Positions 6,524 through 31,500 of a stretch of DNA of 64,000 nucleotides are shown here, piece by piece. This DNA comes from Piromyces finnis finn (taxonomy: Eukaryota; Fungi; Neocallimastigomycota). The notes beneath the pieces were generated by a model that was given only the letters and a program-made list of their open reading frames with translations, searched no databases and was not told the origin of the DNA. A program made the position numbers and the translations under genes. The stretch is taken from contig MCFH01000067.1 of assembly GCA_002104945.1 (NCBI GenBank), forward strand, positions 124,001 to 188,000, given 5' to 3'. The number at the start of each line of letters is the position of its first letter. Position 1 is the stretch's first letter.

Positions 6524-8129
6524 AATTAATTATTAAAAATGGAAAAGAGTTGTATTTATATATTTTCTAATAAATGTATATCTAAATATGTAAAAAATAG
6601 AATAATATAAGAGAATTATTAACTATTATATTATTTTAATAATAATAAAAATTAGAAGAAATAAATAAAATTCACATAATAAATAAAAAAATTAAATATA
6701 AGAATTTTTTTTATATTTTTTTATAAAATTTTTTATTTTTAAAAAGTAAAAAAGATTTTTTTCCTTTTTTTATTAAATTTTTTTAGACAATTTTTCGTTC
6801 AATTTATTGTTGTGAAACATTTTTTAGACTAGTAGTAATACACTTTTTATATTTATTTGATTTAAAATTTATAGATGATAATTAATATTAATATTATTAA
6901 TAATATTAATATAATAAATAATAAATATTAAAGTGATATAAAGAATTAGATGAATTCTGCAATTTGTACATGTGAAATTGACCTACCTAATAAATTAAAT
7001 GAAATAAAAAAGAAAACTAACATCAGGTAGGATAGTGTGGTGTACACTAAATTCTCCTATGAGTTTATAATTTTAATTAAATTAGTAATAAAGTTTAAAA
7101 ATATTTGATGTCATTAAAAAAAAAAAAGAGTTTATAATAATGGTTTTATTCGAAATTAGAAATGTTCTTTTATCATATCCATTCGATGTCTTATTACACC
7201 GAATAAATAATCCTTTTATTCTATTTATATTTAATAACATAATTTTAAAATATTCTGTATTAAAATTGATCTATATAAAAGTTTATTAGAATGCTTTTAT
7301 ATTTATTATTAAAATAAAGCAAAGGATTTTTAAAGTGTATATTGAAAATATTTTTATTTTTTATAACTATTTTTAAATATTTAGAAAAATAAAATATGTA
7401 TTTTATTCATATTTTTGTTATTGTAGTAAAAAATATGAAAATTATATACTTTAAAGCCATTTCTTTTTTTTTTTTTACTATTATCTCTAACCTTTTTATT
7501 ATTAAATACATTTTTTTATTTGATGTATCTCCAATACTTTATCATATTTACTTAAAAATAAAAAAAAGACACCAAATAAAATATTTTTTGGAGAAAATAA
7601 AGAACAATCTTTTTAAATGGGAACAAAACTTTTAACAACCAAAATATCCATGTTTTATTAATATAATAAATTCTTTATATTATAACAAAATACTGTTAAA
7701 ATATGTAAAATATATAAAATATGAAGGTATAAAATGTATTAAAATATTTTGTAGTAAGTTAAAGATGCAACCATCCACAATGTAAACAAGTAAACAAGTA
7801 AATAAAAATATTTTAATTTTAGGAAAATTTCATTTCTACAAAAATGTATGAATAAAAATGTACAATTATAATTAATAATGTACATTCTCATAATTTCAAT
7901 AAAAATTGTTTTGTTGAGAAGTTGAGAAAAAAGAATAAAATTTATTAAACTTTATATTTTTACATCAAAATATATATATATAATAATGATAAGAACCATA
8001 CAAAATGTTTTTTAACTATTTTGTGTCATAATCTAGTTTTGCAAAACACACTTTAAAAATATAAATTAATAAAAATAATCTTTAAATCATAGAAATAGAA
8101 CTTGAAAACTATTTTTAGAAATAATAAAA

Positions 8130-10195
8130 AAAAAAATTCATATATTATTATTGTTGGTTTATTCATATTTTCGTTTGGTAATATTATTAAATCTGCATAT
8201 CATTTACCTGAATCAACTTCTGTTAAAGTTGTACATGAATAATAAATCAATGTATCAAAATATATATTTTGAACAATAAGTTTAAATATTGCTTCTTTAT
8301 AATAATTTATATTTGAAGTTTTATTATGAAAATATTCAATTATAATAGCTACTTCACGTTATTCTTTTCCATTCCATGTATCATTTAATTGTTTTTTAGA
8401 TAATTCTACTTTTTCAAATAATTTTTTCCATTTATTATTTTCTGTGGATACCTTAAATGATGTATGTACTTCTTCATTAGGAATAAATAATTCCCAATTA
8501 ATTTATCAGATTTATTATCATAATCTTTTTTATATTCATAGGCTAAATATCCAAGATGAACAAGCTTTACTAAAACATCGTATTTATTATTATATTCTCC
8601 GCAATTTCTATTGAAATTAACAATATCCATGTCTAATTTTATTCTATTCTTTTTATCACTCATTAAATATACAATATCTTTTTTTAGTCCATCAAAATCC
8701 ATATCGATATATTTATAAAGGTTATCATACGATTCAGTTAAATGCCAATAGTTTCTAATACTATTGAATTCAAATGCTTTTATAATTGACAATGATGTAT
8801 ATATTTCATATGTTTTCCAATAATTCCTATTTTCATTTTTACTTCCATCTGTTAATCTGTAACCATTATATATTTCTTTAATATTATAATAAAAAATATT
8901 TACATATTCATCATCGAAATTTTTCTTTTTTTTAAATTTTTTGCATAATTCTTTCACTTCTTCAACTGTAAAGCCAACATATTTTGACATCCATCCACCT
9001 TCTACCATAGAAAAGTGATCAAAAATCCCTGTGATCTCAGAATTTAATCCATAACTCTTAAGAGGCAAAATTCCTGTCATATAAGTTAAATGTATGCTTT
9101 CTTCTCCTTTAATTAATGAAGTTAAAAATTTCAAGTACTCTATTGAATTTTTATTATTATCTCGAAATACTATATCCCATTCATCAATGACGAGAATATT
9201 ATGTCTACTCGTCTTTTCTAGTATTTCGTTCAATATTTCATTAATGCTGTTTTTATTATCACATTCAAAATCTGCTATAGAATTTTTTACTTCTTTTATA
9301 ATAGATGTTTTAATATTTTCTTTTCCTTCTTTTATACTTGTTTGATAAAGATAATTAAACATATTTAATTTTATTACATTAAATTTTCCTAAATATTTAT
9401 CTCAATTTTCTGATTTTGAAATTTTTTTATCCATAAAACTAGTTATTTTCGATTCTTTATAACTATAATAAGCTGAAAGCATATCTACTATTTTGGTTTT
9501 CCCAAATCTTCTAGGTCTTGAAATACAAATATTTTGTTTCTCTGAATTTATTATTTTATTTAGTTCAAGAATTAATTCTGTTTTATCAACATAAAATTCT
9601 CTTTGTGAAAATTTTTTAAAATCATTTTCACCAGGATTAAATATATTGTTTGTTTCCTCTTTCATATAATTCCACCAGTCAGCTTTAGAAATCAATTTAA
9701 ATAATCGATGTATTTCTTTATTTGGAATGGATATTTCATTATTATATTTATCATAATTTAAATACCCTAAATGGACAAGTTTCATTAGATTGTTTTTTCT
9801 TTTTGAAAATGAATAAATATCATTTTGATACAATAATGAATCTACTTTTATTTTTTTATCCCTTTCTGATTCTATTAATAAAGTAATAACATCTTTTAGA
9901 TTATCATAATTCTTTTGAATAAATTTAGCAAGTAAATCATAATAATTATCATCCATTTGATACCTCTTAACAATATTATTTTTTAAGGATTCTAAAATTA
10001 AATATGGAGAATATATTTTATATATTTCATTTGAAAAACTATCTATTAATTGATAACTGCCATAAGAGTCTTTTAAATTCTCATACTTTATTCTATTTCT
10101 ACCTCTATCTTTGTCATTTTCATACTTTGTTTCGTTTTTATGTATTAATGCTTTATTATTTATTATTTCATCTTCAGAGGTTTTTTGTGTGATTA
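8130..10195 (-). pseudogene. AAA-ATPase-like (PF09820-type) / PD-(D/E)XK nuclease gene of bacterial type, partly tandem-duplicated and disrupted
   Basis: Motifs FYVDKTELI, ICISRPRRFGKT (Walker A), LVIDEWD (Walker B), MTGILP, YVGFTVEEV and LVHLGYL. An in-frame TGA at 9402-9404 links the two tracked ORFs. After a frameshift near 8490 another frame reads LFIPNEEV...SKKQLNDTWNGKE*REVAIIIE...EVDSGK*YADLIILP...KPTIIIYE, a nuclease remnant. No introns. Confidence 0.85.
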
Positions 10196-11009
10196 TTTAC
10201 AAGTATATAATTCCTTTAAATATTGAAAAAGATTCATGATTAATTAATATTTTTATTTTCATAGCTTTTTTCTTTTATTTTGAAAAAAGCTATAAATAAA
10301 TTGAATGATATCCATTGTATCATATTATTAATAATATATCTTAATAATTAAAATAAAATATTTAATATAAAAATTGATACTTTATCATTATGGTATAATT
10401 CATAATACTATGTATAATATTATAGAGAGTATAAATTATAAATTGATGTTATAGAAATAGAAATATTACTATTATTATATTATAATAAAAAAAATCTTTT
10501 AAAAGGTAATATAATGTTAGTTTTATATATAATATATATGTATTACAATAAAGGTTTTAAAATAGTTATTGCCATTTTAAAAAATTATATAATTATATAA
10601 TCCATTAAATGAATAAATATTACTATATTAATGAAAATTAAGTTATTTATTTTGATTTTCTTTGAAATTAATAATATTTATATATATTTATGTCTTTTAT
10701 AACACCATTTTCACAAGGATCCTCTCCTCGTATACCACAATATACCTATGTCTATGAATATCCAAATTATAGAAAAATATTTATAAATTGTATCCTTATG
10801 CGTTACTGATATATCATCATTATAAATACAATGATTATCAATACATTTATTAAATAAACAATCAGAAACATTATATTTTAAAGAAATGTTAAAAAACTAG
10901 TATCACTATTAAGACAATAAACCATCACTTTATTTTTTTTGCTTTATCATTCTATATACAATACTCTACAATATTATATTTTAAATTGTAGTTTTAGGCT
11001 TTCATTCGG

Positions 11010-11642
<633 letters not shown>

Positions 11643-11898
11643 CTTTCATTCGGAAATTCAATAAAATTACCATAGTTATCACTATTTTGTAAAGTGATAC
11701 AATTTCTATTTCTACAATAACTTTTTTCATATTTTGCTCTTACCTGAATTTTCATATTTACATAATAATTTATCAGATATTAAATATTAATAATTATGTA
11801 TATCAAAGGAATATAAATATCTGTATAATTAAATCTATCGTTATCCTTATAATATTTTGTTTTTTTAAAAGGTAAAAAAAACGTTCAAAATGATCATA

Positions 11899-11930
11899 TT
11901 TGAAACAAAAAAGATTTTATTGGTTAAATA
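11899..11930 (+). promoter_or_regulatory. Conserved upstream motif with inverted CCAAT box, shared by both LRR genes
   Basis: TTTGAAACAAAAAAGATTTTATTGGTTAAA lies upstream of gene A. A near-identical TTTGAAACAAAAAAAATTTTTATTGGTTAAA lies at about 14722-14755, upstream of gene B. The flanks are diverged. Confidence 0.4.
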
Positions 11931-11954
11931 ATAAAATTAAAAAAAAAAAAAAAA

Positions 11955-12549
11955 ATGAAAACGCTTTTTTTGTTATTGCTAATCAATTTAACTTTTACAG
12001 CAAAGTTTATTTATTCTTAATTTGTAGAAGATTGTCGTATTGTAAATAAATTATTGGGAGAATTTGAGGAAAATGATTGTTGTTCTTCCCCTGGAATTAC
12101 TTGTGATAAAGGTTTCGTAGTGGCAATGTAATAATAAAGAGAAAGGCTACTTTTTTTTTTTTTTTTCATTTTATTTCTATTCAATAACCTAGATATTCAA
12201 TATTAATAATAATTAACAATTAATTAACAATAGAGAATTAAGAAATGTTAACGTCATATTGCCTGGTGGTTCAATTCCACCTGAAATTGGAAATTTATCA
12301 AACTTGATAAAATTGTAATTATCCATTTTATAAAGGAAAATTTAAAAATTCTTTATTTATATACATCAATTTATATTTATTTTTTTTTTCAATGTTTTAC
12401 AAAATAATAAATAGAGATCTTTTCAATAAAGGTTTTTCTGGTTCCATTCCTCCAGAGCTCGGAAATTTATCCAATTTGAAAGTTTTGTAAAGATTGTTTA
12501 TATTATTATATAATTTATAAAACCTATAATTTCTTATTTTTAAAATTAC

Positions 12550-12581
<32 letters not shown>

Positions 12582-14426
12582 GAATTCTCCAAAAAAATGC
12601 TTTAACTGGTCCCATTCCACCTGAACTTGGAAATTTAACAAAATTGACTTGGTTGTAAATATTTTTTAATAATATTTATTTAAATCTCTCTATAAATTTT
12701 TATTCCTCCAATGAATCATAAAATAATTACATTATTTTCTTTTTTTTTTTTTTATTTTTCATTTCTAAAAATACATTATTAATTAAAAAATAGAAATTTA
12801 GTGGATAATAAATTAAGTGGTTCTATTCCACCTGAACTTGGAAATTTAACAGAATTGGATTCACCGTAATGAATTTATATATACTATCTGTTTAATCTAT
12901 TTATTTATTTTTAAATTCTTAATTTATTAAAATAAAAAAAATATAAAATAATGTTATTTATTCTAATTAGAAATATAAAACTCTTTCATTAATTAAAAAA
13001 AAAAAAAAATAGACGATTAAGTGATAATTATTTAAGTGGTTCCCTTCCACCTGAACTTGGAAAGTTATCAAGCTTGAGAACTTTGTAAATGATTTTTATA
13101 ATATTATTTGTTTATCTATTCATTATATTAATTCTTATTTTAAATGAAACAAAAAAAAAAAAAAATTATATTATTTACATTATTTTTTATTCTTTTTTAA
13201 AATTATTATAAATATGTTATTAATAGATGGATAGAAAATAATAACTTTAGTGGTTCCATTCCACCTGAGCTTGGAAATTTATTAAAATTGAGATGGATGT
13301 AATTAATAATATTTGTTTATATATAATCATTGCTTCTTTATTAATAATTAATTAATTATTTATTTATAAAATAAAAATAATTCATGACCACTTAAAAACA
13401 ACAACAACAACAACAACAACAACTAAAATTGAATAATATCTAATAAATCATGTATGATATTCAGAAATATTAGTAATAACGGATTTAGTAGTACTATGCC
13501 ACAAGAAATATTAAATCGTCCATATGATGAATTGTAAGTAATTTCTTTTTTTTTATATAAATAGATGTACTTTTTATATCGTTGCTCAATATGATTATAT
13601 TGAAAATAGTTTATAGTTTTAAATTATGTTGATTATCATTTTAATGATTATATATAAAATGAATACAAAAAGTTTTTTATTTTAAAATAAATATTAATAT
13701 TAATTATTTGTACTGTCTATATATAGTAAATTTTATAATTATGATGATAGTACCAAACAAGTTCCCGAAAAAGAAGAATCAGATAAATTAATTATTGATA
13801 ATGATTTAAATAAGGATACTTTAAATAAGGATACTAAATCCGATAAGGGTGGTAGTAATACATTATTAGCAATAGTTATTGTGTTTGGAATAATTGGTAT
13901 TGTTTCAAGCATTTTATTATTCCTCGTTATAAAAAAAAATAAAAAGTTAAAAGATAATGATAAAAATAATGTAAGAAATAGTTCTTTATCGACTGTAAAT
14001 AATGTTCACATTAATCCATCTATAATTTCAGGAAATGATGAAAATACAACACTTGATATTGTTTCTACCCCAGTTCTTTCTTTTAATAATAATTATAACA
14101 GTACTATTACGGAAATAAATACTAATAATGCTATTACTACTATTCATGATGATGATGATGATGATGATTCAATAGTAATTAATTCTACTATTACTACAAA
14201 TAACAGATATAGTGTTCCTTTAAATTCTACGAATAATATAAACCATGTAATGACAATGAATAGCATTGGAGAAAAGGGTTTACTTCCAAGTTATGAAGAT
14301 GTTTTAAATGAAGATGGAAAGCATAACACGGAAAAATATCCACTGTCTGACGATAAATCCAAAATTCAAACTATAAAAAATGAAAAAAATAAGGAACCAC
14401 TTCATTCATCAAAAAAGAAATATTAA
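11955..14426 (+). pseudogene. LRR receptor-like protein A (signal peptide, Cys cap, 7 LRR exons, TM, cytoplasmic tail) with in-frame stop at codon 22
   Basis: Exon 1 from 11955 (MKTLFLLLLINLTFTAKFIYS*FVEDC...DCCSSPGITC). LRR exons at 12234-12314, 12415-12486, 12583-12654, 12794-12865, 13013-13084, 13227-13298 and 13465-13533, each with consensus LxxNxLSGSIPPELGNLxxL. Last exon 13727-14426 encodes TM LLAIVIVFGIIGIVSSILLFLVI. TAA at 12018-12020. Confidence 0.85.
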
Positions 14427-14828
14427 AAATAATTTTTAAAAATAAAAAAAATGAAAAAGTATACTTTGAAAGTATATTAAAAATAATAAAAAATTTCATA
14501 GTAAAAAATGAAAAAAAAAAAAAAATAAAAAAATAAAAAATATTTAAATATAGTTTTAAATAAAAAAAAATAAAAAATAGAAATTTATTTAATTTGAATT
14601 TTTTTTTTTTTTTTTTTAATTTTATTAAAATAAAAAGGCGGATTTTTTTTTTTTTTACATTTTTTTTTAAAAATAAAAAAAGTCCAAAAATCGTCCGCTT
14701 TTTTTAAAAAAGTTTGAAAATTTGAAACAAAAAAAATTTTATTGGTTAAAAAAAAAGAATTTAATTAATAAAAAATATATAAATTTGAAAAAGTAAAAAA
14801 GTTAAAAAAAAAAATAAAAATTTGAAAA

Positions 14829-16561
14829 ATGAAAAAGTTGGTTTTGTTATTGCTGTTCAATTTAACTTTTACAATAAACGGTGTCTTTTCAGTATTTGTA
14901 AATGATTGTAGTGCAGTAAATAAATTGTTAGGAGAATCTGATAATTATGATTGTTGCACTCATAATGGAATTACATGTGAAAACGGATTCGTAGCAGTAA
15001 TGTAATGATAAAAACAAAAAGTTCACTTTTTTTTTTTTTTATTTCTACTTAATAGTATAAATAAATGAATATTTATTTTTAATAATTAATTAAACAATAG
15101 AAATTTAAGTAATGGTTTGTATGGTGGTTCAATTCCTCCTGAACTTGGAAATTTGACACGTTTAGTTTATCTGTAATTATTCTTTTTCATTTATATAGGA
15201 AGGAAGAATTAAAAGTTATTTATATATTTATATATACACTAATCTATATATTTTATTATAATGTTTTACGATATGATAAATAGAGATCTTAGTGATCAAG
15301 GTTATCATGGTTCCCTTCCTTCAGAGCTCGGGAATTTATCAAATTTGCAATATATGTGAAGATTGTTTATATGTTATTTGCATAATATAAATGATAATAT
15401 AAATTTTATTCTAATTTTTTTTTTTTTTTTTTTTAAAAAATTATTAAAAATATTCATTATCATTATTATATAAAATAATAATAAAAAAAAAGATATCTTA
15501 GTAATAATGCTTTTACTGGTTCAATACCATCTGAATTTGGAAATTTATTAAAATTGGAAATTTTGTACCTATTTATTGATATAATTTAATATTATAAAAA
15601 AAATAAAAATAAAAATTATTAAACTTTCCTTTAAAAATATACAATTATTTTATTAACTAAATAAATAGATCATTAAGAGATAATCTTTTAAGTGGCTTTA
15701 TCCCTCCTGAACTTGGAAGGTTAAACTTAGAATATTTGTAAAGTATCTTTTACTATTTGAATATATAAATAAATATAATTTTTTATAATTTTTTTTTGTA
15801 TTTATAATATTTATATAATTATATTTTTAAACAATTCATGATCAACTAAAACAAACAACAACTAAAACTTGATAATATTTAACTTTTTATTATATTCAGA
15901 GATATTAGGAATAACGGATTTAGTGGTTCTATACCTCAAGAAATATTAAATAATAATATTTCTAAATTGTATTTAATTTACTTTTTTTTTTATTTTATTT
16001 ATTATATAATAGTTTATATATATTATAATTATATTAGTTGTATTAAAACATTTTTATTCAAATATTCATCATTTAATATAATATAGTTTTCATGATAATT
16101 ATAATGATAAAAATAAACAAGTTGTAGAAAAAGAAGAAAAGAATGATTTAAATAAAGATGCTAAATCCGATAATGGTACAAATCCATTTTTAATAATAGC
16201 CATTGTATTTGGAATAATTAGTATTATTTTGACCATCCTGATATTCCTTGTTTTAAGGAAAAATAGAGATTTAAAAAAGAAAAATAATGAAAGAAATAGC
16301 TTTTCTACTTTAAATAAGGTTCACATTAACTCAACTTCAATTTCTGGAAATGGAGAAAGTTCAACTAATCTTCCAGATATTCCTTTAAATTCTGTAAATG
16401 AGTCAAACTATATAAAATCATTAAATCATACAAATAATAATAATACTATCATTGGAGGAGAAGAAGATTTACTTCCAAGTTATGAAGATATATTAAATGA
16501 AAATGGTGAACATAACACTGGTAATATGCATGACTCAACCTCTAACTTCATTAAAGAATAA
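14829..16561 (+). CDS. LRR receptor-like protein B (signal peptide, Cys cap, 5 LRR exons, TM, Asn-rich tail); appears intact
   Basis: Exon 1 at 14829-15001 (MKKLVLLLLFNLTF...DCCTHNGITC). Five 69-72 nt LRR exons starting at 15101 (e.g. NLSNGLYGGSIPPELGNLTRLVYL; DLSDQGYHGSLPSELGNLSNLQYM). Last exon 16087-16561 encodes TM FLIIAIVFGIISIILTILIFLVL and LLPSY. Confidence 0.9.
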
Positions 16562-19500
16562 ATACTAAAAGCAATTTTTAAATTTTTATTATTAATATTA
16601 TTAATCAAAAAATGAAAAAATAAAAAAATAAAATAGATATACATTGAAAGTATATGAATAATAATAAAAACTTTATAGTAAAATAAAAGAAAAATAGTAA
16701 ATAACAATAATAAATTCTTTAATAATAAAAAAAAATAAAAATAAGAAAATAATAAAAGTGATATAATCAAATATTTAATTAAACAAATAAAAAAATAAAT
16801 GATTTTATATAGAAAAGGAAAAAAAAAATACTTTATAAATTGAAAGATGTTTTATTATTTTAATTTTGTTTTATTTTTAAGATAAAAAAAAACGTTATCT
16901 TCATGCCTACTAAATTCTACTCTTTTTTTAAAAAATAAAAAATAAAAAAATATAAAAAAAATTATGTTTTTTATATTTTTTTAAACTAATAATAATATAA
17001 TTGAGATTTTTAAGTTAGTTTGAAAATAATTCTGTGGATTTAATCCATAGGAAAAGAATTTTCAAATATCTTTTACATATATTTTTCCAAAATCAGAAGA
17101 AGGAAAGTGATAATAATAATTCTTATTTCAAATTATTTTAGCATTATCATAAAAAAGATTTAATATTAGTAATATATGCAAAAAGTAAGGATTACGTCTT
17201 CAATAATACTATATATATCAAATATCTCTAAAATACTTAAAATAGCATATCACAAATGAAAAAAAAAAATACAAATTCAAAATAAAAAAAGTAAAAAAAA
17301 AAGTAATTCAAGCAAAGTTTAAGATAAATCACAAAATTTCTAAAATATATTTAATTTAAATGATAAAAAAAAAAAAAAGAGATTAATGTAGAAAAATTAT
17401 TAAAATACTTTTAACAGAAATTTAGAAATTTTTGGGATTTAAAAAATTTTTTAGAAAAAAAAAAAGAAAAGAAAAATTCTTCTTGTTGATGCCAACAATG
17501 TAAAATATTTCAATATTAGAAAATTAAGCATTGGAATTCTTAACAATAATTAGAAGATCACCCACAATTTAGTATCCAAATTTTAAAACAATCATTGAAA
17601 CAATAATATTAATTGTATAATTAAGTAATTAATATCAAGATGAAGGTCATTAATAATAATCCTATTATAGTATTTTTTATTATTTTTATTTTTTAAAATG
17701 TATTGTATTATATTAAATAAACAAACCACAATATATATGTATAAATATGTAGTTTGAATAGAATGTAACCATGGTAGTTCTTTATCATAATTTACATTAA
17801 AAAGTTGACAACCTAAATCAACGACTCTTAACAAAGGAATGTAAAAACATTTATATATAAAAAATAAAAAAGAATTCCATTTCCTATTCTAATTTAATTT
17901 AAAAGAAGATTTAATTAAAAATTTATTAAATATAAAAATGTATTATTTTTATAAAGTATAACTATACCTATCGTTATAATTACATGAAAATACCCTATCC
18001 CCATAAAACTTTTATGGCGGTGTTATTACTAAAATCATGATGATTAATAAGGATTTATTCTACCCATAAATAAATATAATTTTTATTTTATTTATTATTA
18101 ACAAAATATTTACTAAAAAGCATTATATTTTGAAAATTTTTAATTATTGAAAAACATGATTTGTTTAAAATATTTATTATCATTAAAAAAATACAAAATA
18201 GAATAATTCTCATTTCAATTCATAAATTGTAAATATAATATATATCTTTATTTAATCATAATCATTATAAGTTAAGAATTCAATTTGTTATTAAAAGTTT
18301 TGTAACCACTAAATTGTTATTACAATAAATACTTTATTATTAAAGTATAATAATTGCATTTGTCTTTCAATAGGATTCGATGTTACATTTTATCAAAAGA
18401 AAAAATTATTAGTTGTGCTGTTAAATCCTTTCTTATTTTTTCTTCATCATTGACGTCCTTGGCTATCCCATTAAACTTTTTGAACATTGATCATTGTTGG
18501 CCAATAATATAAGGTATTACTATGGGCTGAAGTGCAGTGAGCATGAAAATTTACTATAAATTCTCAGTTTAATTTGATCCTTGTATTCTTTCCACTCGAA
18601 TTATTATTTTTTATTTTATGTTTTAATTATTCAAAATAATAGTTAAATTACATTTAAAATAGCATTTAATCCATAAATTCATTAATTTATTTATTGGAAC
18701 ATAAAACCTGTTAAATATCATATTTAAATCATAATTAACATAATTTTATTTCTAATACTCCTTCAAAGAAATTAGAATATTCGAAAATGCCATATTTTCC
18801 AATTTTCGAATTTTGCAGAATTTTAACAAAAGAATCAACATAATGACTGCTCAATGTACAATATTTCAATCAATAATAATTAATGTAATTAAAACAATTA
18901 ATATATTAAAATAATGAATTTAAATAAATTATATTATACAAGTAATATATAGAGTAATATAAATATTATTTTTTGTTGAATATTAAATATTTTATAATTA
19001 TTAAAAATAATAAATATCATTTTAAACTTGAAATGATTAAAAGTCACCTATGAAAGTTATATTTAATTCAAGTGAACGTCTCAAAATCCGACCCAATGTT
19101 TAATTGTACCTGTCAGGAAGGGGGATGTCTGACCTGACAAAAAACAAGAATCTTTTCTAAATCATTTATAATGTTGTATATAAACTATGAATGAAGAACT
19201 ATAAAATTATAAAACTAAAAAATATTTATAACATTTATTTTTAATATTCATTTTAATTTTTATATATAAATAATAACTATTTTTATTATTTTTTTATTGG
19301 AATTATACTTTTTTTCAAAACTTTTTATATTTTAAATAATTCTTTAAATTTTTAAAAAAATTAAAAATATTTTTATTAAATAATTTTTAAATACAAAAAT
19401 AAAAAAGTATATATATTAAAATATATATCCAATAAAAAATAATAAAAAATAGTTATATTATTATATATAAAAATTAAATGAATATTATAAAATAAATGTT

Positions 19501-22173
19501 ATAAATATTTTTTAGTTTTATAATTTTATAGTTCTTCATTCATAGTTTATATACAACATTATAAATGATTTAGAAAAGATTCTTGTTTTTTGTCAGGGTC
19601 AGACATCCCCCTTCCTGACAGGTAAATTAAACATGTGGGTCGGATTTTGAGACGTTCACTTGAATTAAATATAACTTTCATAGGTGACTTTTAATCATTT
19701 CAAGTTTAAAATGATATTTATTATTTTTAATAATTATAAAATATTTAATATTCAACAAAATAATATTTATATTACTCTATATATTACTTGTATAATATAA
19801 TTTATTTAAATTCATTATTTTAATATATTAATTGTTTTAATTACATTAATTATTATTGATTGAAATATTGTACATTGAGCAGTCCAATTATGTTGATTCT
19901 TTTGTTAAAATTCTGCAAATTCGAAAATTGGAAAATATGGCATTTTCGAATATTCTAATTTCTTTGAAGGAGTATTAGAAATAAAAATTATGTTAATTAT
20001 GATTTAAATATGATATTTAACAGGTTTTATGTTCCAATAAATAAATTAATGAATTTATGGATTAAATGCTATTTTAAATGTAATTTAACTATTATTTTGA
20101 ATAATTAAACATAAAATAAAAATAATAATTCGAGTGGAAAGAATACAAGGATCAAATTAAACTGAGAATTTATAGTAAATTTTCATGCTCACTGCACTTC
20201 AGCCCATAGTAATACCTTATATTATTGGCCAACAATGATCAATGTTCAAAAAGTTTAATGGGATAGCCAAGGACGTCAATGATGAAGAAAAAATAAGAAA
20301 GGATTTAAACAGCACAACTAATAATTTTTTCTTTTGATAAAATGTAACATCGAATCCTATTGAAAGACAAATGCAATTATTATACTTTAATAATAAAGTA
20401 TTTATTGTAATAACAATTTAGTGGTTACAAAACTTTTAATAACAAATTGAATTCTTAACTTATAATTGATTATGATTAAATAAAGATATATATTATATTT
20501 ACAATTTATGAATTGAAATGAGAATTATTCTATTTTGTATTTTTTTTAATGATAATAAATATTTTAAAACAAATCATGTTTTTCAATAATTAAAAATTTT
20601 CAAAATATAATGCTTTTTTAGTAAATATTTGTTAATAATAATAAAATAAAAATTATATTTATTTATGGGTAGAATAAATCCTTATTAATCATCATGATTT
20701 TAGTAATAACACCGCCATAAAAGTTTTTATGGGGATAGGGTATTTTCATGTAATTATAACGATAGGTATAGTTATACTTTATAAAAATAATACATTTTTT
20801 ATATTTAATAAATTTTTAATTAAATCTTCTTTTAAATTAAATTAGAATAGGAAATGGAATTCTTTTTTATTTTTTATATATAAATGTTTTTACATTCCTT
20901 TTGTTAAGAGTCGTTGATTTAGGTTGTCAACTTTTTAATGTAAATTATGATAAAGAACTACCATGGTTACATTCTATTCAAACTACATATATTTATACAT
21001 ATATATTGTGGTTTGTTTATTTAATATAATACAATACATTTTAAAAATAAAAATAATAAAAAAATACTATAATAGGATTATTATTAATGACCTTATCTTG
21101 ATATTAATTACTTAATTATACAATTAATATTATTGTTTCAATGATTGTTTTAAAAATTTGGATACTAAATTGTGGGTGATCTTCTAATTATTGTTAAGAA
21201 TTCCAATGCTTAATTTTCTAATATTGAAATATTTTACATTGGTTGGCATCAACAAGAAGAATTTTTCTTTTCTTTTTTTTTTTCTAAAAAATTTTTTAAA
21301 TCCCAAAATTTCTAAATTCTGTTAAAAGTATTTTAATAATTTTTCTACATTAATCTCTTTTTTTTTTTTTATCATTTAAATTAAATATATTTTAGAAATT
21401 TTGTGATTTATCTTAAACTTTGCTTGAATTACTTTTTTTTTTACTTTTTTTATTTTGAATTTGTATTTTTTTTTTCATTTGTGATATGCTATTTTAAGTA
21501 TTTTAGAGATATTTGATATATATAGTATTATTGAAGACGTAATCCTTACTTTTTTGCATATATTACTAATATTAAATCTTTTTTATGATAATGCTAAAAT
21601 AATTTGAAATAAGAATTATTATTATCACTTTCCTTCTTCTGATTTTGGAAAAATATATGTAAAAGATATTTGAAAATTCTTTTCCTATGGATTAAATCCA
21701 CAGAATTATTTTCAAACTAACTTAAAAATCTCAATTATATTATTATTAGTTTAAAAAAATATAAAAAACATAATTTTTTTTATATTTTTTTATTTTTTAT
21801 TTTTTAAAAAAAGAGTAGAATTTAGTAGGCATGAAGATAACGTTTTTTTTTATCTTAAAAATAAAACAAAATTAAAATAATAAAACATCTTTCAATTTAT
21901 AAAGTATTTTTTTTTTCCTTTTCTATATAAAAATCATTTATTTTTTTATTTGTTTAATTAAATATTTGATTATATCACTTTTATTATTTTCTTATTTTTA
22001 TTTTTTTTTTATTATTAAAGAATTTATTATTGTTATTTACTATTTTTCTTTTATTTTACTATAAAGTTTTTATTATTATTCATATACTTTCAATGTATAT
22101 CTATTTATTTTTTTATTTTTTCATTTTTTGATTAATAATATTAATAATAAAAATTTAAAATTGCTTTTAGTAT

Positions 22174-23901
22174 TTATTCTTTAATGAAGTTAGAGGTTGA
22201 GTCATGCATATTACCAGTGTTATGTTCACCATTTTCATTTAATATATCTTCATAACTTGGAAGTAAATCTTCTTCTCCTCCAATGATAGTATTATTATTA
22301 TTTGTATGATTAATGATTTTATATAGTTTGACTCATTTACAGAATTTAAAGGAATATCTGGAAGATTAGTTGAACTTTTCTCCATTTCCAGAAATTGAAG
22401 TTGAGTTAATGTGAACCTTATTTAAAGTAGAAAAGCTATTCTTTCATTATTTTTCTTTTTTAAATCTCTATTTTTCCTTAAAACAAGGAATATCAGGATG
22501 GTCAAAATAATACTAATTATTCCAAATACAATGGCTATTATTAAAAATGGATTTGTACCATTATCGGATTTAGCATCTTTATTTAAATCATTCTTTTCTT
22601 CTTTTTCTACAACTTGTTTATTTTTATCATTATAATTATCATGAAAACTATATTATATTAAATGATGAATATTTGAATAAAAATGTTTTAATACAACTAA
22701 TATAATTATAATATATATAAACTATTATATAATAAATAAAATAAAAAAAAAAGTAAATTAAATACAATTTAGAAATATTATTATTTAATATTTCTTGAGG
22801 TATAGAACCACTAAATCCGTTATTCCTAATATCTCTGAATATAATAAAAAGTTAAATATTATCAAGTTTTAGTTGTTGTTTGTTTTAGTTGATCATGAAT
22901 TTGTTTAAAAATATAATTATATAAATATTATAAATACAAAAAAAAATTATAAAAATTATATTTATTTATATATTCAATAGTAAAAGATACTTTACAAATA
23001 TTCTAAGTTTAACCTTCCAAGTTCAGGAGGGATAAAGCCACTTAAAAGATTATCTCTTAATGATCTATTTATTTAGTTAATAAAATAATTGTATATTTTT
23101 AAAGGAAAGTTTAATAATTTTTATTTTTATTTTTTTATAATATTAAATTATATCAATAAATAGGTACAAAATTTCCAATTTTAATAAATTTCCAAATTCA
23201 GATGGTATTGAACCAGTAAAAGCATTATTACTAAGATATCTTTTTTTTTATTTTATTTTATATAATAATGATAATGAATATTTTTAATAATTTTTTAAAA
23301 AAAAAAAAAAAAAAATTAGAATAAAATTTATATTATCATTATATTATGCAAATAACATATAAACAATCTTCACATATATTGCAAATTTGATAAATTCCCG
23401 AGCTCTGAAGGAAGGGAACCATGATAACCTTGATCACTAAGATCTCTATTTATCATATCGTAAAACATTATAATAAAATATATAGATTAGTGTATATATA
23501 AATATATAAATAACTTTTAATTCTTCCTTCCTATATAAATGAAAAAGAATAATTACAGATAAACTAAACGTGTCAAATTTTCCAAGTTCAGGAGGAATTG
23601 AACCACCATACAAACCATTACTTAAATTTCTATTGTTTAATTAATTATTAAAAATAAATATTCATTTATTTATACTATTAAGTAGAAATAAAAAAAAAAA
23701 AAAGTGAACTTTTTGTTTTTATCATTACATTACTGCTACGAATCCGTTTTCACATGTAATTCCATTATGAGTGCAACAATCATAATTATCAGATTCTCCT
23801 AACAATTTATTTACTGCACTACAATCATTTACAAATACTGAAAAGACACCGTTTATTGTAAAAGTTAAATTGAACAGCAATAACAAAACCAACTTTTTCA
23901 T
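22174..23901 (-). pseudogene. Inverted copy of LRR gene B (with indels)
   Basis: Reverse complement of 14829-16561, with a few 1-bp deletions in the last exon. Confidence 0.8.
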
Positions 23902-24296
23902 TTTTCAAATTTTTATTTTTTTTTTTAACTTTTTTACTTTTTCAAATTTATATATTTTTTATTAATTAAATTCTTTTTTTTAACCAATAAAATTTTTTTT
24001 GTTTCAAATTTTCAAACTTTTTTAAAAAAAGCGGACGATTTTTGGACTTTTTTTATTTTAAAAAAAAATGTAAAAAAAAAAAAAAAATCCGCCTTTTTAT
24101 TTTAATAAAATTAAAAAAAAAAAAAAAAAAATTCAAATTAAATAAATTTCTATTTTTTATTTTTTTTTATTTAAAACTATATTTAAATATTTTTTATTTT
24201 TTTTTTTTTTTTTTTTCATTTTTTTACTATGAAATTTTTATTATTTTAATATACTTTCAAAGTATACTTTTTCATTTTTTTATTTTTAAAATATTT

Positions 24297-25260
24297 TTAA
24301 TATTTCTTTTTGATGAATGAAGTGGTTCCTTATTTTTTTCATTTTTTATAGTTTGAATTTTGGATTTATCGTCAGACAGTGGATATTTTTCCGTGTTATG
24401 CTTTCCATCTTCATTTAAACATCTTCATACTTGGAAGTAACCCTTTTCTCCAATGCTATTCATTGTCATTACATGGTTTATATTATTCGTAGAATTTAAA
24501 GGAACACTATATCTGTTATTTGTAGTAATAGTAGAATTAATTACTATTGAATCATCATCATCATCATCATCATGAATAGTAGTAATAGCATTATTAGTAT
24601 TTATTTCCGTAATAGTACTGTTATAATTATTATTAAAAGAAAAACTGGGGTAGAAACAATATCAAGTGTTGTATTTTCATCATTTCCTGAAATTATAGAT
24701 GATTAATGTGAACATTATTTACAGTCGATAAGAACTATTTCTTACATTATTTTTATCATTATCTTTTAACTTTTTATTTTTTTTTATAACGAGGAATAAT
24801 AAAATGCTTGAAACAATACCAATTATTCCAAACACAATAACTATTGCTAATAAATGTATTACTACCACCCTTATCGGATTTAGTATCCTTATTTAAAGTA
24901 TCCTTATTTAAATCATTATCAATAATTAATTTATCTGATTCTTCTTTTTCGGGAACTTTTTGGTACTATCATCATAATTATAAAATTTACTATATATAGG
25001 ACAGTACAAATAATTAATATTAATTATTGTATTTTAAAATAAAAAACTTTTTTATTCATTTTTATATATTAATCATTAAAAATGATAATCAACATAATTT
25101 AAAACTATAAAACTATTTTCAATATAATCATATTGAGCAACGATATAAAAAGTACATCTATTTATATAAAAAAAAAAAGAAATTACTTACAATTCATCAT
25201 ATGGACGATTTAATATTTCTTGGGCATAGTACTACTAAATCCGTTATTACATATTTCTGA
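24297..25260 (-). pseudogene. Inverted partial copy (last two exons) of LRR gene A
   Basis: Reverse complement of about 13465-14426, with many single-base deletions. Confidence 0.8.
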
Positions 25261-25499
25261 ATATCATACATATTTATTAGATATTATTCAATTTTAGTTG
25301 TTGTTGTTTGTTGTTGTTGTTGTTTTTAAGTGGTCATGAATTATTTTTTTTTATAAATAAATAATTAATTATTATTAATAAAAATATATTATTCATTTTA
25401 ATTAATTATTTATAAAATAAAGAATAATCAGACTTAAAAACACAACAACAACAACACAACAACTAAAATTGAATAATATCTAATAAACATGTATGATAT

Positions 25500-26421
25500 C
25501 AGAAATATAGTAATAACGGATTTAGTAGTACTATCCACAAGAAATATTTAAATCGTCCATATGATGAATTGTAAGTAATTTCTTTTTTTTTTATATAATA
25601 GATGTATTTATATATTTGCTCAATGATTATATTGAATTTTATAGTTTTAATTATGTTGATTATCATTTTATGATTATATATAAATGAATACAAAAGTTTT
25701 TTTTTTTATATATTAATATTAATTATTTTTACTGCTATATATATTTTAATTATGATTAGTACCAAACAAGTTCCGAAAAAGAAGAATCAGATAAATTAAT
25801 TATTGATAATGATTTAATAGGTACTTTAAATAAGGATACTAAATCCGATAAGGGTGGTAGTAAACATTATTAGCATAGTTATTGTGTTTGGAATAATTGG
25901 TATTGTTTCAAGCATTTTATTATTCCTCGTTATAAAAAAAAATAAAAGTTAAAAGATAATGATAAAATAATGTAAGAAATAGTTCTTATCGACTGTAAAT
26001 AATGTTCACATTAATCCATCTATAATTTCAGGAAATGATGAAATACACACTTGATATTGTTTCTACCCCAGTTCTTTCTTTTAATAATAATTATAACAGT
26101 ACTATTACGGAAATAAATACTATAATGCTATATTACTATTCATGATGATGATGATGATGATGATTCAATAGTAATTAATTCTACTATTACTACAAATAAA
26201 CAGATATAGTGTTCCTTTAATTCTACGAATAATATAAACCATGTAATGACAATGAATAGCATTGGAGAAAAGGGTTTACTTCCAAGTTATGAAGATGTTT
26301 TAAATGAAGATGGAAGCATAACACGGAAAAATATCCACTGTCTGACGATAAATCCAAAATTCAAACTATAAAAAATGAAAAAAATAAGGAACCACTTCAT
26401 TCATCAAAAAAGAAATATTAA
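25500..26421 (+). pseudogene. Third, partial copy (last two exons) of LRR gene A, indel-rich
   Basis: Matches 13465-14426 with dense 1-bp deletions; lacks the 5' exons. Confidence 0.8.
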
Positions 26422-26821
26422 AAATAATTTTTAAAAATAAAAAAAATGAAAAAGTATACTTTGAAAGTATATTAAAAATAATAAAAATTTCATAGTAAAA
26501 AAATGAAAAAAAAAAAAAAATAAAAAAATAAAAAATATTTAAATATAGTTTTAAATAAAAAAAATAAAAAATAGAAATTTATTTAATTTGAATTTTTTTT
26601 TTTTTTTTTTTAATTTTATTAAAATAAAAAGGCGGATTTTTTTTTTTTTACATTTTTTTTTAAAAAAAAAAAAAGTCCAAAAATCGTCCGCTTTTTTTAA
26701 AAAAGTTTGAAAATTTGAAACAAAAAAAATTTTATTGGTTAAAAAAAAAGAATTTAATTAATAAAAAATATATAAATTTGAAAAAGTAAAAAAGTTAAAA
26801 AAAAAAATAAAAATTTGAAAA

Positions 26822-28554
26822 ATGAAAAAGTTGGTTTTGTTATTGCTGTTCAATTTAACTTTTACAATAAACGGTGTCTTTTCAGTATTTGTAAATGATT
26901 GTAGTGCAGTAAATAAATTGTTAGGGAGAATCTGATAATTATGATTGTTGCACTCATAATGGAATTACATGTGAAAACGGATTCGTAGCAGTAATGTAAT
27001 GATAAAAACAAAAAGTTCACTTTTTTTTTTTTTTATTTCTACTTAATAGTATAAATAAATGAATATTTATTTTTAATAATTAATTAAACAATAGAAATTT
27101 AAGTAATGGTTTGGTATGGTGGTTCAATTCCTCCTGAACTTGGAATTTGACACGTTTAGTTTATCTGTAATTATTCTTTTTCATTTATATAGGAAGGAAG
27201 AATTAAAAGTTATTTATATATTTATATATACACTAATCTATATATTTTATTATAATGTTTTACGATATGATAAATAGAGATCTTAGTGATCAAGGTTATC
27301 ATGGTTCCCTTCCTTCAGAGCTCGGGAATTTATCAAATTTGCAATATATGTGAAGATTGTTTATATGTTATTTGCATAATATAAATGATAATATAAATTT
27401 TATTCTAATTTTTTTTTTTTTTTTTTTTTTAAAAAATTATTAAAAATATTCATTATCATTATTATATAAAATAATAATAAAAAAAAAGATATCTTAGTAA
27501 TAATGCTTTTACTGGTTCAATACCATCTGAATTTGGAAATTTATTAAAATTGGAAATTTTGTACCTATTTATTGATATAATTTAATATTATAAAAAATAA
27601 AATAAAAATTATTAAACTTTCCTTTAAAATATACAATTATTTTATTAACTAAATAAATAGATCATTAAGAGATAATCTTTTAAGTGGCTTTATCCCTCCT
27701 GAACTTGGAAGGTTAAACTTAGAATATTTGTAAAGTATCTTTTACTATTTGAATATATAAATAAATATAATTTTTTATAATTTTTTTTTTGTATTTATAA
27801 TATTTATATAATTATATTTTTAAACAATTCATGATCAACTAAAACAAACAACAACTAAAACTTGATAATATTTAACTTTTTATTATATTCAGAGATATTA
27901 GGAATAACGGATTTAGTGGTTCTATACCTCAAGAAATATTAAATAATAATATTTCTAAATTGTATTTAATTTACTTTTTTTTTTATTTTATTTATTATAT
28001 AATAGTTTATATATATTATAATTATATTAGTTGTATTAAAACATTTTTATTCAAATATTCATCATTTAATATAATATAGTTTTCATGATAATTATAATGA
28101 TAAAAATAAACAAGTTGTAGAAAAAGAAGAAAAGAATGATTTAAATAAAGATGCTAAATCCGATAATGGTACAAATCCATTTTTAATAATAGCCATTGTA
28201 TTTGGAATAATTAGTATTATTTTGACCATCCTGATATTCCTTGTTTTAAGGAAAAATAGAGATTTAAAAAAGAAAAATAATGAAAGAAATAGCTTTTCTA
28301 CTTTAAATAAGGTTCACATTAACTCAACTTCAATTTCTGGAAATGGAGAAAGTTCAACTAATCTTCCAGATATTCCTTTAAATTCTGTAAATGAGTCAAA
28401 CTATATAAAATCATTAAATCATACAAATAATAATAATACTATCATTGGAGGAGAAGAAGATTTACTTCCAAGTTATGAAGATATATTAAATGAAAATGGT
28501 GAACATAACACTGGTAATATGCATGACTCAACCTCTAACTTCATTAAAGAATAA
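26822..28554 (+). CDS. Third copy of LRR gene B
   Basis: Direct repeat of 14829-16561. Small indels in exons 1-2 (e.g. TTAGGGAGAA, TTGGTATGGT) look like read errors; the last exon ORF is identical. Confidence 0.65.
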
Positions 28555-31500
28555 ATACTAAAAGCAATTTTTAAATTTTTATTATTAATATTATTAATCA
28601 AAAAATGAAAAAATAAAAAAATAAAATAGATATACATTGAAAGTATATGAATAATAATAAAAACTTTATAGTAAAATAAAAGAAAAATAGTAAATAACAA
28701 TAATAAATTCTTTAATAATAAAAAAAAAATAAAAATAAGAAAATAATAAAAGTGATATAATCAAATATTTAATTAAACAAATAAAAAAATAAATGATTTT
28801 ATATAGAAAAGGAAAAAAAAAATACTTTATAAATTGAAAGATGTTTTATTATTTTAATTTTGTTTTATTTTTAAGATAAAAAAAACGTTATCTTCATGCC
28901 TACTAAATTCTACTCTTTTTTTAAAAAATAAAAAATAAAAAAATATAAAAAAAATTATGTTTTTTATATTTTTTTTAAACTAATAATAATATAATTGAGA
29001 TTTTTAAGTTAGTTTGAAAATAATTCTGTGGATTTAATCCATAGGAAAAGAATTTTCAAATATCTTTTACATATATTTTTCCAAAATCAGAAGAAGGAAA
29101 GTGATAATAATAATTCTTATTTCAAATTATTTTAGCATTATCATAAAAAAGATTTAATATTAGTAATATATGCAAAAAGTAAGGATTACGTCTTCAATAA
29201 TACTATATATATCAAATATCTCTAAAATACTTAAAATAGCATATCACAAATGAAAAAAAAAATACAAATTCAAAATAAAAAAAGTAAAAAAAAAAGTAAT
29301 TCAAGCAAAGTTTAAGATAAATCACAAAATTTCTAAAATATATTTAATTTAAATGATAAAAAAAAAAAAAAGAGATTAATGTAGAAAAATTATTAAAATA
29401 CTTTTAACAGAAATTTAGAAATTTTTGGGATTTAAAAAATTTTTTAGAAAAAAAAAAGAAAAGAAAAATTCTTCTTGTTGATGCCAACAATGTAAAATAT
29501 TTCAATATTAGAAAATTAAGCATTGGAATTCTTAACAATAATTAGAAGATCACCCACAATTTAGTATCCAAATTTTAAAACAATCATTGAAACAATAATA
29601 TTAATTGTATAATTAAGTAATTAATATCAAGATGAAGGTCATTAATAATAATCCTATTATAGTATTTTTTTATTATTTTTATTTTTTAAAATGTATTGTA
29701 TTATATTAAATAAACAAACCACAATATATATGTATAAATATATGTAGTTTGAATAGAATGTAACCATGGTAGTTCTTTATCATAATTTACATTAAAAAGT
29801 TGACAACCTAAATCAACGACTCTTAACAAAAGGAATGTAAAAACATTTATATATAAAAAATAAAAAAGAATTCCATTTCCTATTCTAATTTAATTTAAAA
29901 GAAGATTTAATTAAAAATTTATTAAATATAAAAAATGTATTATTTTTATAAAGTATAACTATACCTATCGTTATAATTACATGAAAATACCCTATCCCCA
30001 TAAAAACTTTTATGGCGGTGTTATTACTAAAATCATGATGATTAATAAGGATTTATTCTACCCATAAATAAATATAATTTTTATTTTATTTATTATTAAC
30101 AAAATATTTACTAAAAAAGCATTATATTTTGAAAATTTTTAATTATTGAAAAACATGATTTGTTTTAAAATATTTATTATCATTAAAAAAATACAAAATA
30201 GAATAATTCTCATTTCAATTCATAAATTGTAAATATAATATATATCTTTATTTAATCATAATCAATTATAAGTTAAGAATTCAATTTGTTATTAAAAGTT
30301 TTGTAACCACTAAATTGTTATTACAATAAATACTTTATTATTAAAGTATAATAATTGCATTTGTCTTTCAATAGGATTCGATGTTACATTTTATCAAAAG
30401 AAAAAATTATTAGTTGTGCTGTTAAATCCTTTCTTATTTTTTCTTCATCATTGACGTCCTTGGCTATCCCATTAAACTTTTTGAACATTGATCATTGTTG
30501 GCCAATAATATAAGGTATTACTATGGGCTGAAGTGCAGTGAGCATGAAAATTTACTATAAATTCTCAGTTTAATTTGATCCTTGTATTCTTTCCACTCGA
30601 ATTATTATTTTTATTTTATGTTTAATTATTCAAAATAATAGTTAAATTACATTTAAAATAGCATTTAATCCATAAATTCATTAATTTATTTATTGGAACA
30701 TAAAACCTGTTAAATATCATATTTAAATCATAATTAACATAATTTTATTTCTAATACTCCTTCAAAGAAATTAGAATATTCGAAAATGCCATATTTTCCA
30801 ATTTTCGAATTTGCAGAATTTTAACAAAAGAATCAACATAATTGACTGCTCAATGTACAATATTTCAATCAATAATAATTAATGTAATTAAAACAATTAA
30901 TATATTAAAATAATGAATTTAAATAAATTATATTATACAAGTAATATATAGAGTAATATAAATATTATTTTGTTGAATATTAAATATTTTATAATTATTA
31001 AAAATAATAAATATCATTTTAAACTTGAAATGATTAAAAGTCACCTATGAAAGTTATATTTAATTCAAGTGAACGTCTCAAAATCCGACCCACATGTTTA
31101 ATTGTACCTGTCAGGAAGGGGGATGTCTGACCCTGACAAAAAACAAGAATCTTTTCTAAATCATTTATAATGTTGTATATAAACTATGAATGAAGAACTA
31201 TAAAATTATAAAACTAAAAATATTTATAACATTTATTTTATAATATTCATTTTAATTTTTATATATAATAATATAACTATTTTTTATTATTTTTTTATTG
31301 GAATTATACTTTTATTGTCAAAACTTTTTATATTTTAAATAATTCTTTAAAAACTGCTATTTAAAACCAAATTGAAAAATTATTTTTATTTAAAAGAATT
31401 ATTTATTATACAAAAAATAAAAAAGTATATATATTTATAAAATAAAATATAAAGAATACAGTTTCATATATCAATAAAAAAAAAAAGGGAATAAGAATAT

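Follow-up and report, generated by a model that had tools for sequence, protein, structure and literature searches.

Genes A and B occupy positions 11955–14426 and 14829–16561 of a 64,000 nt stretch of Piromyces finnis DNA (GenBank assembly GCA_002104945.1, contig MCFH01000067.1, positions 124,001–188,000 of the forward strand), referred to here as the window and numbered from its first nucleotide. They are probably tandem paralogues within a small, lineage-restricted branch of an old zoosporic-fungal family of single-pass (type I) membrane proteins with plant-type leucine-rich repeats (LRRs). Gut fungi carry kinase-less, SERK-sized LRR membrane proteins of this type; their exon-per-repeat layout and Cys cap are common to a blastoclad, and their intron position is that reported for rice LRR-kinases. 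The pair is of a known kind, the diversifying receptor repertoire proposed for it in an earlier reading of this DNA (the original prediction) is unsupported, and the modest new point is the layout shared with Catenaria.

Exon layout and protein architecture of genes A and B

Exon models were built by trying every AG/GT combination near the proposed boundaries for open spliced frames. Splicing, translation and the ratio of nonsynonymous to synonymous substitution rates (dN/dS) of the joined genes were computed locally, and searches and structure comparison used single exons or public proteins. LRR exons are numbered A1–A7 and B1–B5 within each gene. The resulting features, all on the forward strand, are as follows.

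11955–14426, +: gene A; nine exons, namely a cap exon, seven one-LRR exons and an exon for the membrane helix and tail
11955–12127, 12234–12314 (81 nt) and 12415–12486 (72 nt), +: gene A, exons 1–3, by splice-site search
12583–12654, 12794–12865, 13013–13084 and 13227–13298 (72 nt each), +: gene A, exons 4–7, by splice-site search
13465–13533 (69 nt) and 13727–14426, +: gene A, exons 8 and 9, by splice-site search
12234–13533, +: the seven LRR exons of gene A (81 nt, five of 72 nt, 69 nt)
12018–12020, +: in-frame TAA at codon 22 of gene A, right after the signal-peptide-like segment; the aligned codon of gene B is GTA
13863–13931, +: membrane helix of A, with the motif IVFGII, then KKNKK
14271–14312, +: cytoplasmic motif ExxLLPSYEDVLNE of A, shaped like LPxY and YxxPhi signals, by paralogue comparison
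14829–16561, +: gene B; intact, 333 codons in seven exons, namely a cap exon, five one-LRR exons and an exon for the membrane helix and tail
14829–15001, 15101–15172, 15284–15355 and 15493–15564 (the last three 72 nt), +: gene B, exons 1–4, by splice-site search
15669–15737 and 15900–15968 (69 nt each) and 16087–16561, +: gene B, exons 5–7, by splice-site search
15101–15968, +: the five LRR exons of gene B (three of 72 nt, two of 69 nt), collinear with A1, A2, A3, A5/A6 and A7
16187–16255, +: membrane helix of B, with the motif IVFGII, then RKNRDLKKK
16460–16501, +: cytoplasmic motif of B, EEDLLPSYEDILNE, by paralogue comparison

All 14 introns of the two genes are GT..AG, 96–193 nt long and in phase 2, and each interrupts the codon of the first Leu of xxLxLxx. 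The splice-site search thus bears out two tandem paralogues with one LRR per 69–81 nt phase-2 exon, seven in A and five in B, as had been proposed. DNA of the window is ~18 % G+C, and the stop frequency in local DNA is 0.088 per codon. With stops at this rate, 333 consecutive open codons in B have a probability of ~5e-14, and the frame is therefore not a chance one.

Gene A has a spliced frame of 460 codons that is open apart from a single stop. The 438 codons past that stop remain open (chance ~3e-18), so the break is either recent or a consensus error shared by the assembled copies. The A/B locus is assembled twice in GCA_002104945.1, on MCFH01000067.1 and MCFH01000119.1, and over 11643–17000 the sole differences between these contigs are six one-base indels in homopolymers, none of which lies in an exon. 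As there is no coding difference between them, the TAA stands in both. No in-frame ATG follows the stop within exon 1, and no alternative splice or start rescues the frame. A 23 nt ‘intron’ that would remove the stop was rejected, being too short and disrupting the frame. Additionally, the split codon at the A4/A5 junction (12864–13015) specifies Pro at a beta-strand position that is Leu or Ile in every other repeat, a possible second mark of decay in this gene.

The repeat of A and B, read from a register table of eight full repeats, is the 24-residue LxxLxLxxNxLSGxIPxxLGxLxx. Across the eight 72 nt repeats in register L1, L4, G16, P19, E21 and G23 are invariant, and positions 5, 6, 8, 10 and 13 are the most variable. 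Strong variation at such positions, earlier taken as a sign of diversification, is usual for any LRR. Pfam LRR_1 scores above cut-off for gene B, and LRR_1, LRR_8 and LRR_4 do so for P0003, a public protein called on an apparent further copy of B.

Each protein begins with a hydrophobic stretch and has four Cys, all within the N-terminal cap, which shows a plant-like CC-x5-C motif. A charged linker joins the ectodomain to the membrane helix, and the cytoplasmic tail beyond it is of low complexity. No kinase or other catalytic domain was found in A or B, and their last exons gave only sub-threshold Pfam matches, to single-pass membrane families. Hydropathy, Cys positions and Pfam thus agree, for both genes, with the predicted hydrophobic N-terminus, Cys cap, one membrane helix and kinase-less tail. 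The only cytoplasmic element conserved among the paralogues is ExxLL-[LP]PSY-x-[DE]-[VI].

Relatives in Catenaria, plants and other lineages

Catenaria anguillulae (Blastocladiomycota) shares the gene layout and a homologous Cys cap, and this is what is new here. When the Catenaria protein BCR44DRAFT_1444112 (P0085) is mapped onto its locus, a cap exon is followed by seven 72 nt one-LRR exons and a 54 nt exon with a partial eighth repeat, all introns being phase 2 at the same Leu as in A and B. A Cys-rich C-cap, the membrane helix and the tail come from its last exon, and the only Pfam families reported for the gene are LRR ones. In a second protein, BCR44DRAFT_1437553 (P0062), each repeat is encoded by its own block of 72 or 75 nt. 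The gene B cap aligns to that of P0062 at 39 % identity (E 3e-6) with all four Cys aligned. In hhalign against LRRNT_2-type caps the two P. finnis caps alone reached a probability of 7 %, whereas the four fungal caps obtained by adding those of Catenaria reached 90 % (E 1.5e-6).

The two Catenaria genes thus resemble A and B exon for exon, in the homologous four-Cys cap and in the VFGII of the membrane helix. They differ in having a Cys-rich C-cap, eight to nine repeats, unrelated tails without the PSY motif and a GC-rich genome. Since both layout and homologous cap occur in Catenaria, they are common to two zoosporic fungal phyla and are not an invention of gut fungi; from these comparisons the gene kind looks old in zoosporic fungi. 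UniRef names P0062 and P0085 ‘non-specific serine/threonine kinase’, although for both of them Pfam lists only LRR families. At one of the two Catenaria loci a second LRR gene lies ~1 kb downstream, so the arrangement is tandem there too.

Plant ectodomains are the closest matches of the repeats. When the LRR part of P0002, the public model of gene B, was compared with solved structures, the first 40 sequence matches were all plant (GSO1, FLS2, MIK2, PEPR1, ERL and BRI1). The AlphaFold model of P0003 has a block-mean predicted local distance difference test (pLDDT) score of 91–97 at residues 21–110, which cover the LRRs, with 77.7 for the whole model, and a helix at 148–180. By Foldseek its first 50 matches are all plant, with SERK ectodomains at the top; the best, OsSERK2, has 44 % identity over 96 columns and a root mean square deviation of 1.3 A. 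Sequence matches and the P0003 model together support placing the repeats in the plant-type 24-residue class. The class was also said to be plant-specific, which it is not: LRR matches of ~40–57 % identity are found in Bacteroidota, Cytophagales, cyanobacteria, diatoms and Catenaria (proteins of 139–443 aa).

The likeness to plants extends to the introns. Those of rice LRR-kinase genes are described as ones that ‘split the first Leu of xxLxLxx with phase 2’, with 72 nt one-repeat exons (PMC3050792); intron position and phase in A and B equal these, and the plant-like repeat-per-exon layout noted earlier is thereby upheld. Among plant proteins, SERK/BAK1 (and ERECTA family) ectodomains share 24-residue repeats, about five repeats after a Cys cap and 72 nt phase-2 exons. 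Unlike SERK/BAK1, A and B are without a kinase, a Ser-Pro hinge or a C-terminal Cys cap, their own cap is shorter and fails Pfam LRRNT_2, and their tail is unrelated and lineage-specific. Plant receptor-like proteins (RLPs) of the Cf-9 and RXEG1 type likewise have a signal-peptide-like N-terminus, a CC-x5-C Cys cap and plant-type LRRs outside the cell, then charged residues next to the membrane, one membrane helix and a kinase-less tail. Compared with RLPs, A and B have far fewer repeats, no island domain or C-cap, intron-rich genes and a tail of 100–190 residues versus ~25; the resemblance does not by itself imply common descent.

One-repeat exons also occur in protists and algae. Exon-shuffled LRR (ROCO) genes of brown algae were reportedly described by Zambounis in 2012. 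Such ROCO genes have 72 bp LRR exons and are reported to be alternatively spliced (PMC11378527), and Tetrahymena has arrays of 90 bp LRR exons (PMC6564038). One-repeat exons are described as phase 2 in brown-alga ROCO genes (PMC11378527), in Tetrahymena (PMC6564038) and in gonadotropin receptors. As in A and B, the ROCO and Tetrahymena genes have one LRR per symmetric phase-2 exon, with repeat number changing by cassette duplication. They form large families of reportedly shuffled exon order, whereas A and B are few in copies and collinear; ROCO proteins are moreover cytoplasmic and their genes reportedly alternatively spliced, whereas A and B are predicted to be extracellular.

Family size, cassette duplication and competing explanations

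Defined by membrane anchor and tail, the subfamily comprises four loci: A, B, a gene ending at position 288 of the window and a 5′-truncated paralogue C on MCFH01000100.1, which has kept no more than its three final LRR cassettes and the tail.

1–288, +: 3′ end of a third family gene, the main part of which precedes the window; C-terminal motif at 235–276

This third member had been described as the tail of a tandem paralogue. It does carry the same C-terminal motif, but it is not beside A, lying ~11.6 kb off, with a peptidase M13 gene, an AAA-ATPase-like gene and a short interspersed nuclear element (SINE) in between. A profile of the membrane helix and tail, run against 1.84 billion representatives, matched only P. 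finnis proteins, namely A, a copy of B, a fold-back copy of A's tail and BCR36DRAFT_375507 (P0121). One further match, P0122 (ENA), was rejected, as its tandem repeats were matched in seven separate stretches and it has no LRR or membrane-anchor likeness. The tail was not found by tblastn in JGI metagenomes, and against the ESM Atlas every score was <0.9. P0121 joins an unrelated upstream open reading frame to the LRR cassettes and tail of paralogue C (locus 8001–11510 of the extracted stretch). Paralogue C has PPSY in place of the LPSY of A, B and the upstream gene, and one intron of its locus holds a long trinucleotide-like repeat.

In a DNA comparison, the cap exon and first three LRR cassettes of A align with those of B, and the sixth and seventh cassettes and tail of A with the last two cassettes and tail of B, at 65–70 % in both segments and with introns included. 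The best exon pairs are A2–B2 (78 %) and A7–B5 (81 %), and the best intron pairs are those after A1 and B1 (72 %) and after A6 and B4 (68 %). Exons A3–A6 are mutually 67–75 % identical and the introns after A3, A4 and A5 65–71 %, so that A3–A6 with their introns form a tandem cassette array with a period of roughly 210–230 nt. Exon B4 lacks one codon and most resembles A5, while the intron after it is closest to that following A6. Exon order is collinear between the genes, and no non-collinear order or exon exchange was found in alignments of exons, introns and protein. As judged from these alignments, A gained two adjacent exon-plus-intron cassettes or B lost two, and the difference in repeat number is attributable to unequal recombination between cassettes over evolutionary time rather than to exon exchange. 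Because the exons are symmetric, gain or loss of a cassette keeps the frame. Hence the predicted capacity for repeat gain and loss without frameshift is real, the two genes differing by frame-preserving cassettes. Swapping of exons between paralogues, predicted alongside it, is contradicted by the collinear order and by extra repeats that are adjacent duplicates.

By the Nei–Gojobori method, applied to the single pair A versus B, dN/dS over the 56 scaffold codons is 0.54. For the five exposed positions the value is 1.9, from 15 codons only and with one partner broken. With few codons and a broken partner, dN/dS cannot separate relaxed from diversifying selection.

The preferred explanation is that genes of the A/B type undergo ordinary birth and death through tandem gene duplication, unequal cassette recombination and decay, with B as the working member of the pair. 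Variety would then build up over evolutionary time, and neither splicing nor somatic shuffling would contribute. B probably serves in binding at the cell surface: the concave face of its SERK-sized ectodomain would be the site for a ligand or partner, as in plant ectodomains of that size. The tail would act via partners or trafficking: [LP]PSY-E-[DE]-V has the form of a PY motif combined with a YxxPhi sorting signal, and the conservation of a motif so shaped favours trafficking regulation or partner signalling. PY motifs are ligands of the WW domains in Rsp5/Nedd4 ligases, and the [LP]PSY motif might by its form be a sorting or ubiquitin-ligase motif.

Several points weigh against this explanation. 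No C-terminal Cys-pair cap follows the last LRR of A or B, and Pfam LRRNT_2 (PF08263) gave no match to the cap even at E 10. The sorting signal is seen in the tail as a pattern alone. The A versus B dN/dS of 0.74 overall and ~1.0 in the LRRs fits relaxed constraint as well as function. No protein spanning the full length of B was found among database proteins of 139–443 aa, and the public models of both genes are fragments. Finally, the intron position that A and B share with plants and Catenaria might have arisen by convergence, since one intron is multiplied whenever its cassette duplicates.

One alternative is that the cluster is a functionless, decaying remnant, with A a pseudogene and B an unexpressed relic still free of stop codons. 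Consistent with such decay are the TAA at codon 22 of A in both contigs, the Pro for a conserved Leu at A4/A5, the overall dN/dS, the truncation of paralogue C and the failure to find a full-length B protein. B nevertheless keeps 333 open codons and 12 canonical splice sites despite 8.8 % stop codons, tail motif and cap Cys are conserved among the paralogues, scaffold dN/dS is 0.54, and 29 of 30 positions of an upstream motif have been retained. A wholly decaying cluster is thus unlikely, though it is the most credible of the alternatives to a working B. The original prediction favoured a diversifying repertoire that would yield many ligand specificities from symmetric one-repeat exons exchanged among genes or left out during splicing. 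Any exon skip would keep the frame, all LRR exons being multiples of 3 nt flanked by phase-2 introns; repeat number does vary (seven versus five), dN/dS at exposed positions is 1.9, and the brown-alga precedent of alternatively spliced 72 bp LRR exons exists (PMC11378527). A repertoire is very unlikely all the same, as the extra repeats are local tandem copies in collinear genes, only about four loci have the tail, one of them nonsense-mutated and one truncated, the apparent extra copies are probably artefact, and the elevated ratio comes from 15 codons.

Recent uptake by gut fungi of a plant LRR receptor gene, introns included, from ingested plant material would account for best sequence and structural matches to plant ectodomains, for the rice intron position and phase, and for a cap with the plant-like CC-x5-C. 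The same layout and a homologous cap are however present in Catenaria, a free-living or nematode-associated blastoclad, and LRRs of this class are common among bacteria and diatoms. The genes are entirely native in composition and introns (GC ~18 %), and a kinase and a plant-like C-cap or tail are absent. Such a gain is accordingly rated as highly improbable. A deeper connection can be suggested tentatively, though it is doubtful: the plant-type LRR ectodomain may be one ancestral eukaryotic cassette (shortened LRRNT_2-like Cys cap, 24-residue repeats, phase-2 intron at the first xxLxLxx Leu) kept in plants and in Neocallimastigomycota/Blastocladiomycota and lost in Dikarya. In that case the kinase-less LRR membrane proteins of fungi would be truly homologous, in gene structure as well, to the ectodomains of plant RLPs and receptor-like kinases (RLKs).

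A 2010 survey, made without a gut-fungus genome, found membrane LRR receptors almost absent from Fungi (PMC2939053), and according to a 2026 paper ‘LRR-RLK’ orthogroups have expanded in chytrids (PMC13618815). Literature searches turned up no publication about LRR receptor-like proteins in Neocallimastigomycota or Blastocladiomycota. Should the shared layout stem from common descent, it would be relevant to the origin of plant receptor ectodomains and to surface sensing by zoosporic fungi. The locus itself is ordinary, with one intact gene, one broken gene and no sign of shuffling, and fragmentary public models of it already exist.

Assembly, public gene models and upstream features

Extra B-like sequence appears in the window at ~22.2–23.9 kb (−) and 26.9–28.6 kb (+), because 13337–19400 recurs first as a reverse copy (to 25382) and then as a forward copy (25387–31435) of the same 6 kb unit.

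19400–31435, no strand assigned: two extra passes of the 6 kb unit, holding the apparent genes B′ and B″ and copies of the last two exons of A

B′ and B″ differ from B by indels only, with 0 substitutions in 1002 coding bases. The three passes are equidistant, and their differences are mainly one-base indels, mostly in homopolymers. On MCFH01000119.1 the unit is single-copy and continues straight into the sequence found from 31435 of the window onward, the fold-back being absent. Indel-only differences and the absence from the second contig indicate that the extra passes are probably an assembly artefact, that is, a fold-back misassembly of MCFH01000067.1 at 19400–31435. B′ and B″ were consequently rejected as real paralogues, being repeated passes of one unit. 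The public proteins BCR36DRAFT_374610 (P0123) and P0003 are called on these extra passes.

The SINE upstream of A (10999–11655) is absent from the second contig, where an empty site at 8189–8201 of the extracted stretch has one 13 bp target copy, CTTTCATTCGGAA, with flanks free of substitution over ~16 kb. Either the SINE inserted very recently or is polymorphic, or two populations of reads were assembled separately.

Public annotation cuts gene A into two models, of 128 aa and 259 aa. The last exon of A is 100 % identical to P. finnis BCR36DRAFT_464208 (P0001), which consists of the last two exons of the gene. Gene B corresponds to BCR36DRAFT_374611 (P0002), named ‘L domain-like protein’, a truncated model of 253 aa whose start is an intronic ATG. 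All public models of A and B lack the cap exon. The practical value of the present analysis lies in a corrected gene model and in flagging the misassembly behind spurious annotated proteins. Within the fourth LRR exon of B (15717–15737), P0002 uses a donor 18 nt upstream of that in P0003, the model of the B′ copy, which removes LNLEYL from the fourth repeat. This could be an alternative 5′ splice site or a choice of the gene caller.

Upstream of both genes is a 30 nt motif, TTTGAAACAAAAAA[G/A]ATTTTATTGGTTAAA, with 29 of 30 positions common to A and B and containing an inverted CCAAT. By A/B comparison it is located as follows.

11899–11928, +: 30 nt upstream motif, 27 nt before the A ATG
14721–14750, +: 30 nt upstream motif, 79 nt before the B ATG

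The motif is a candidate shared promoter element of the A/B subfamily.

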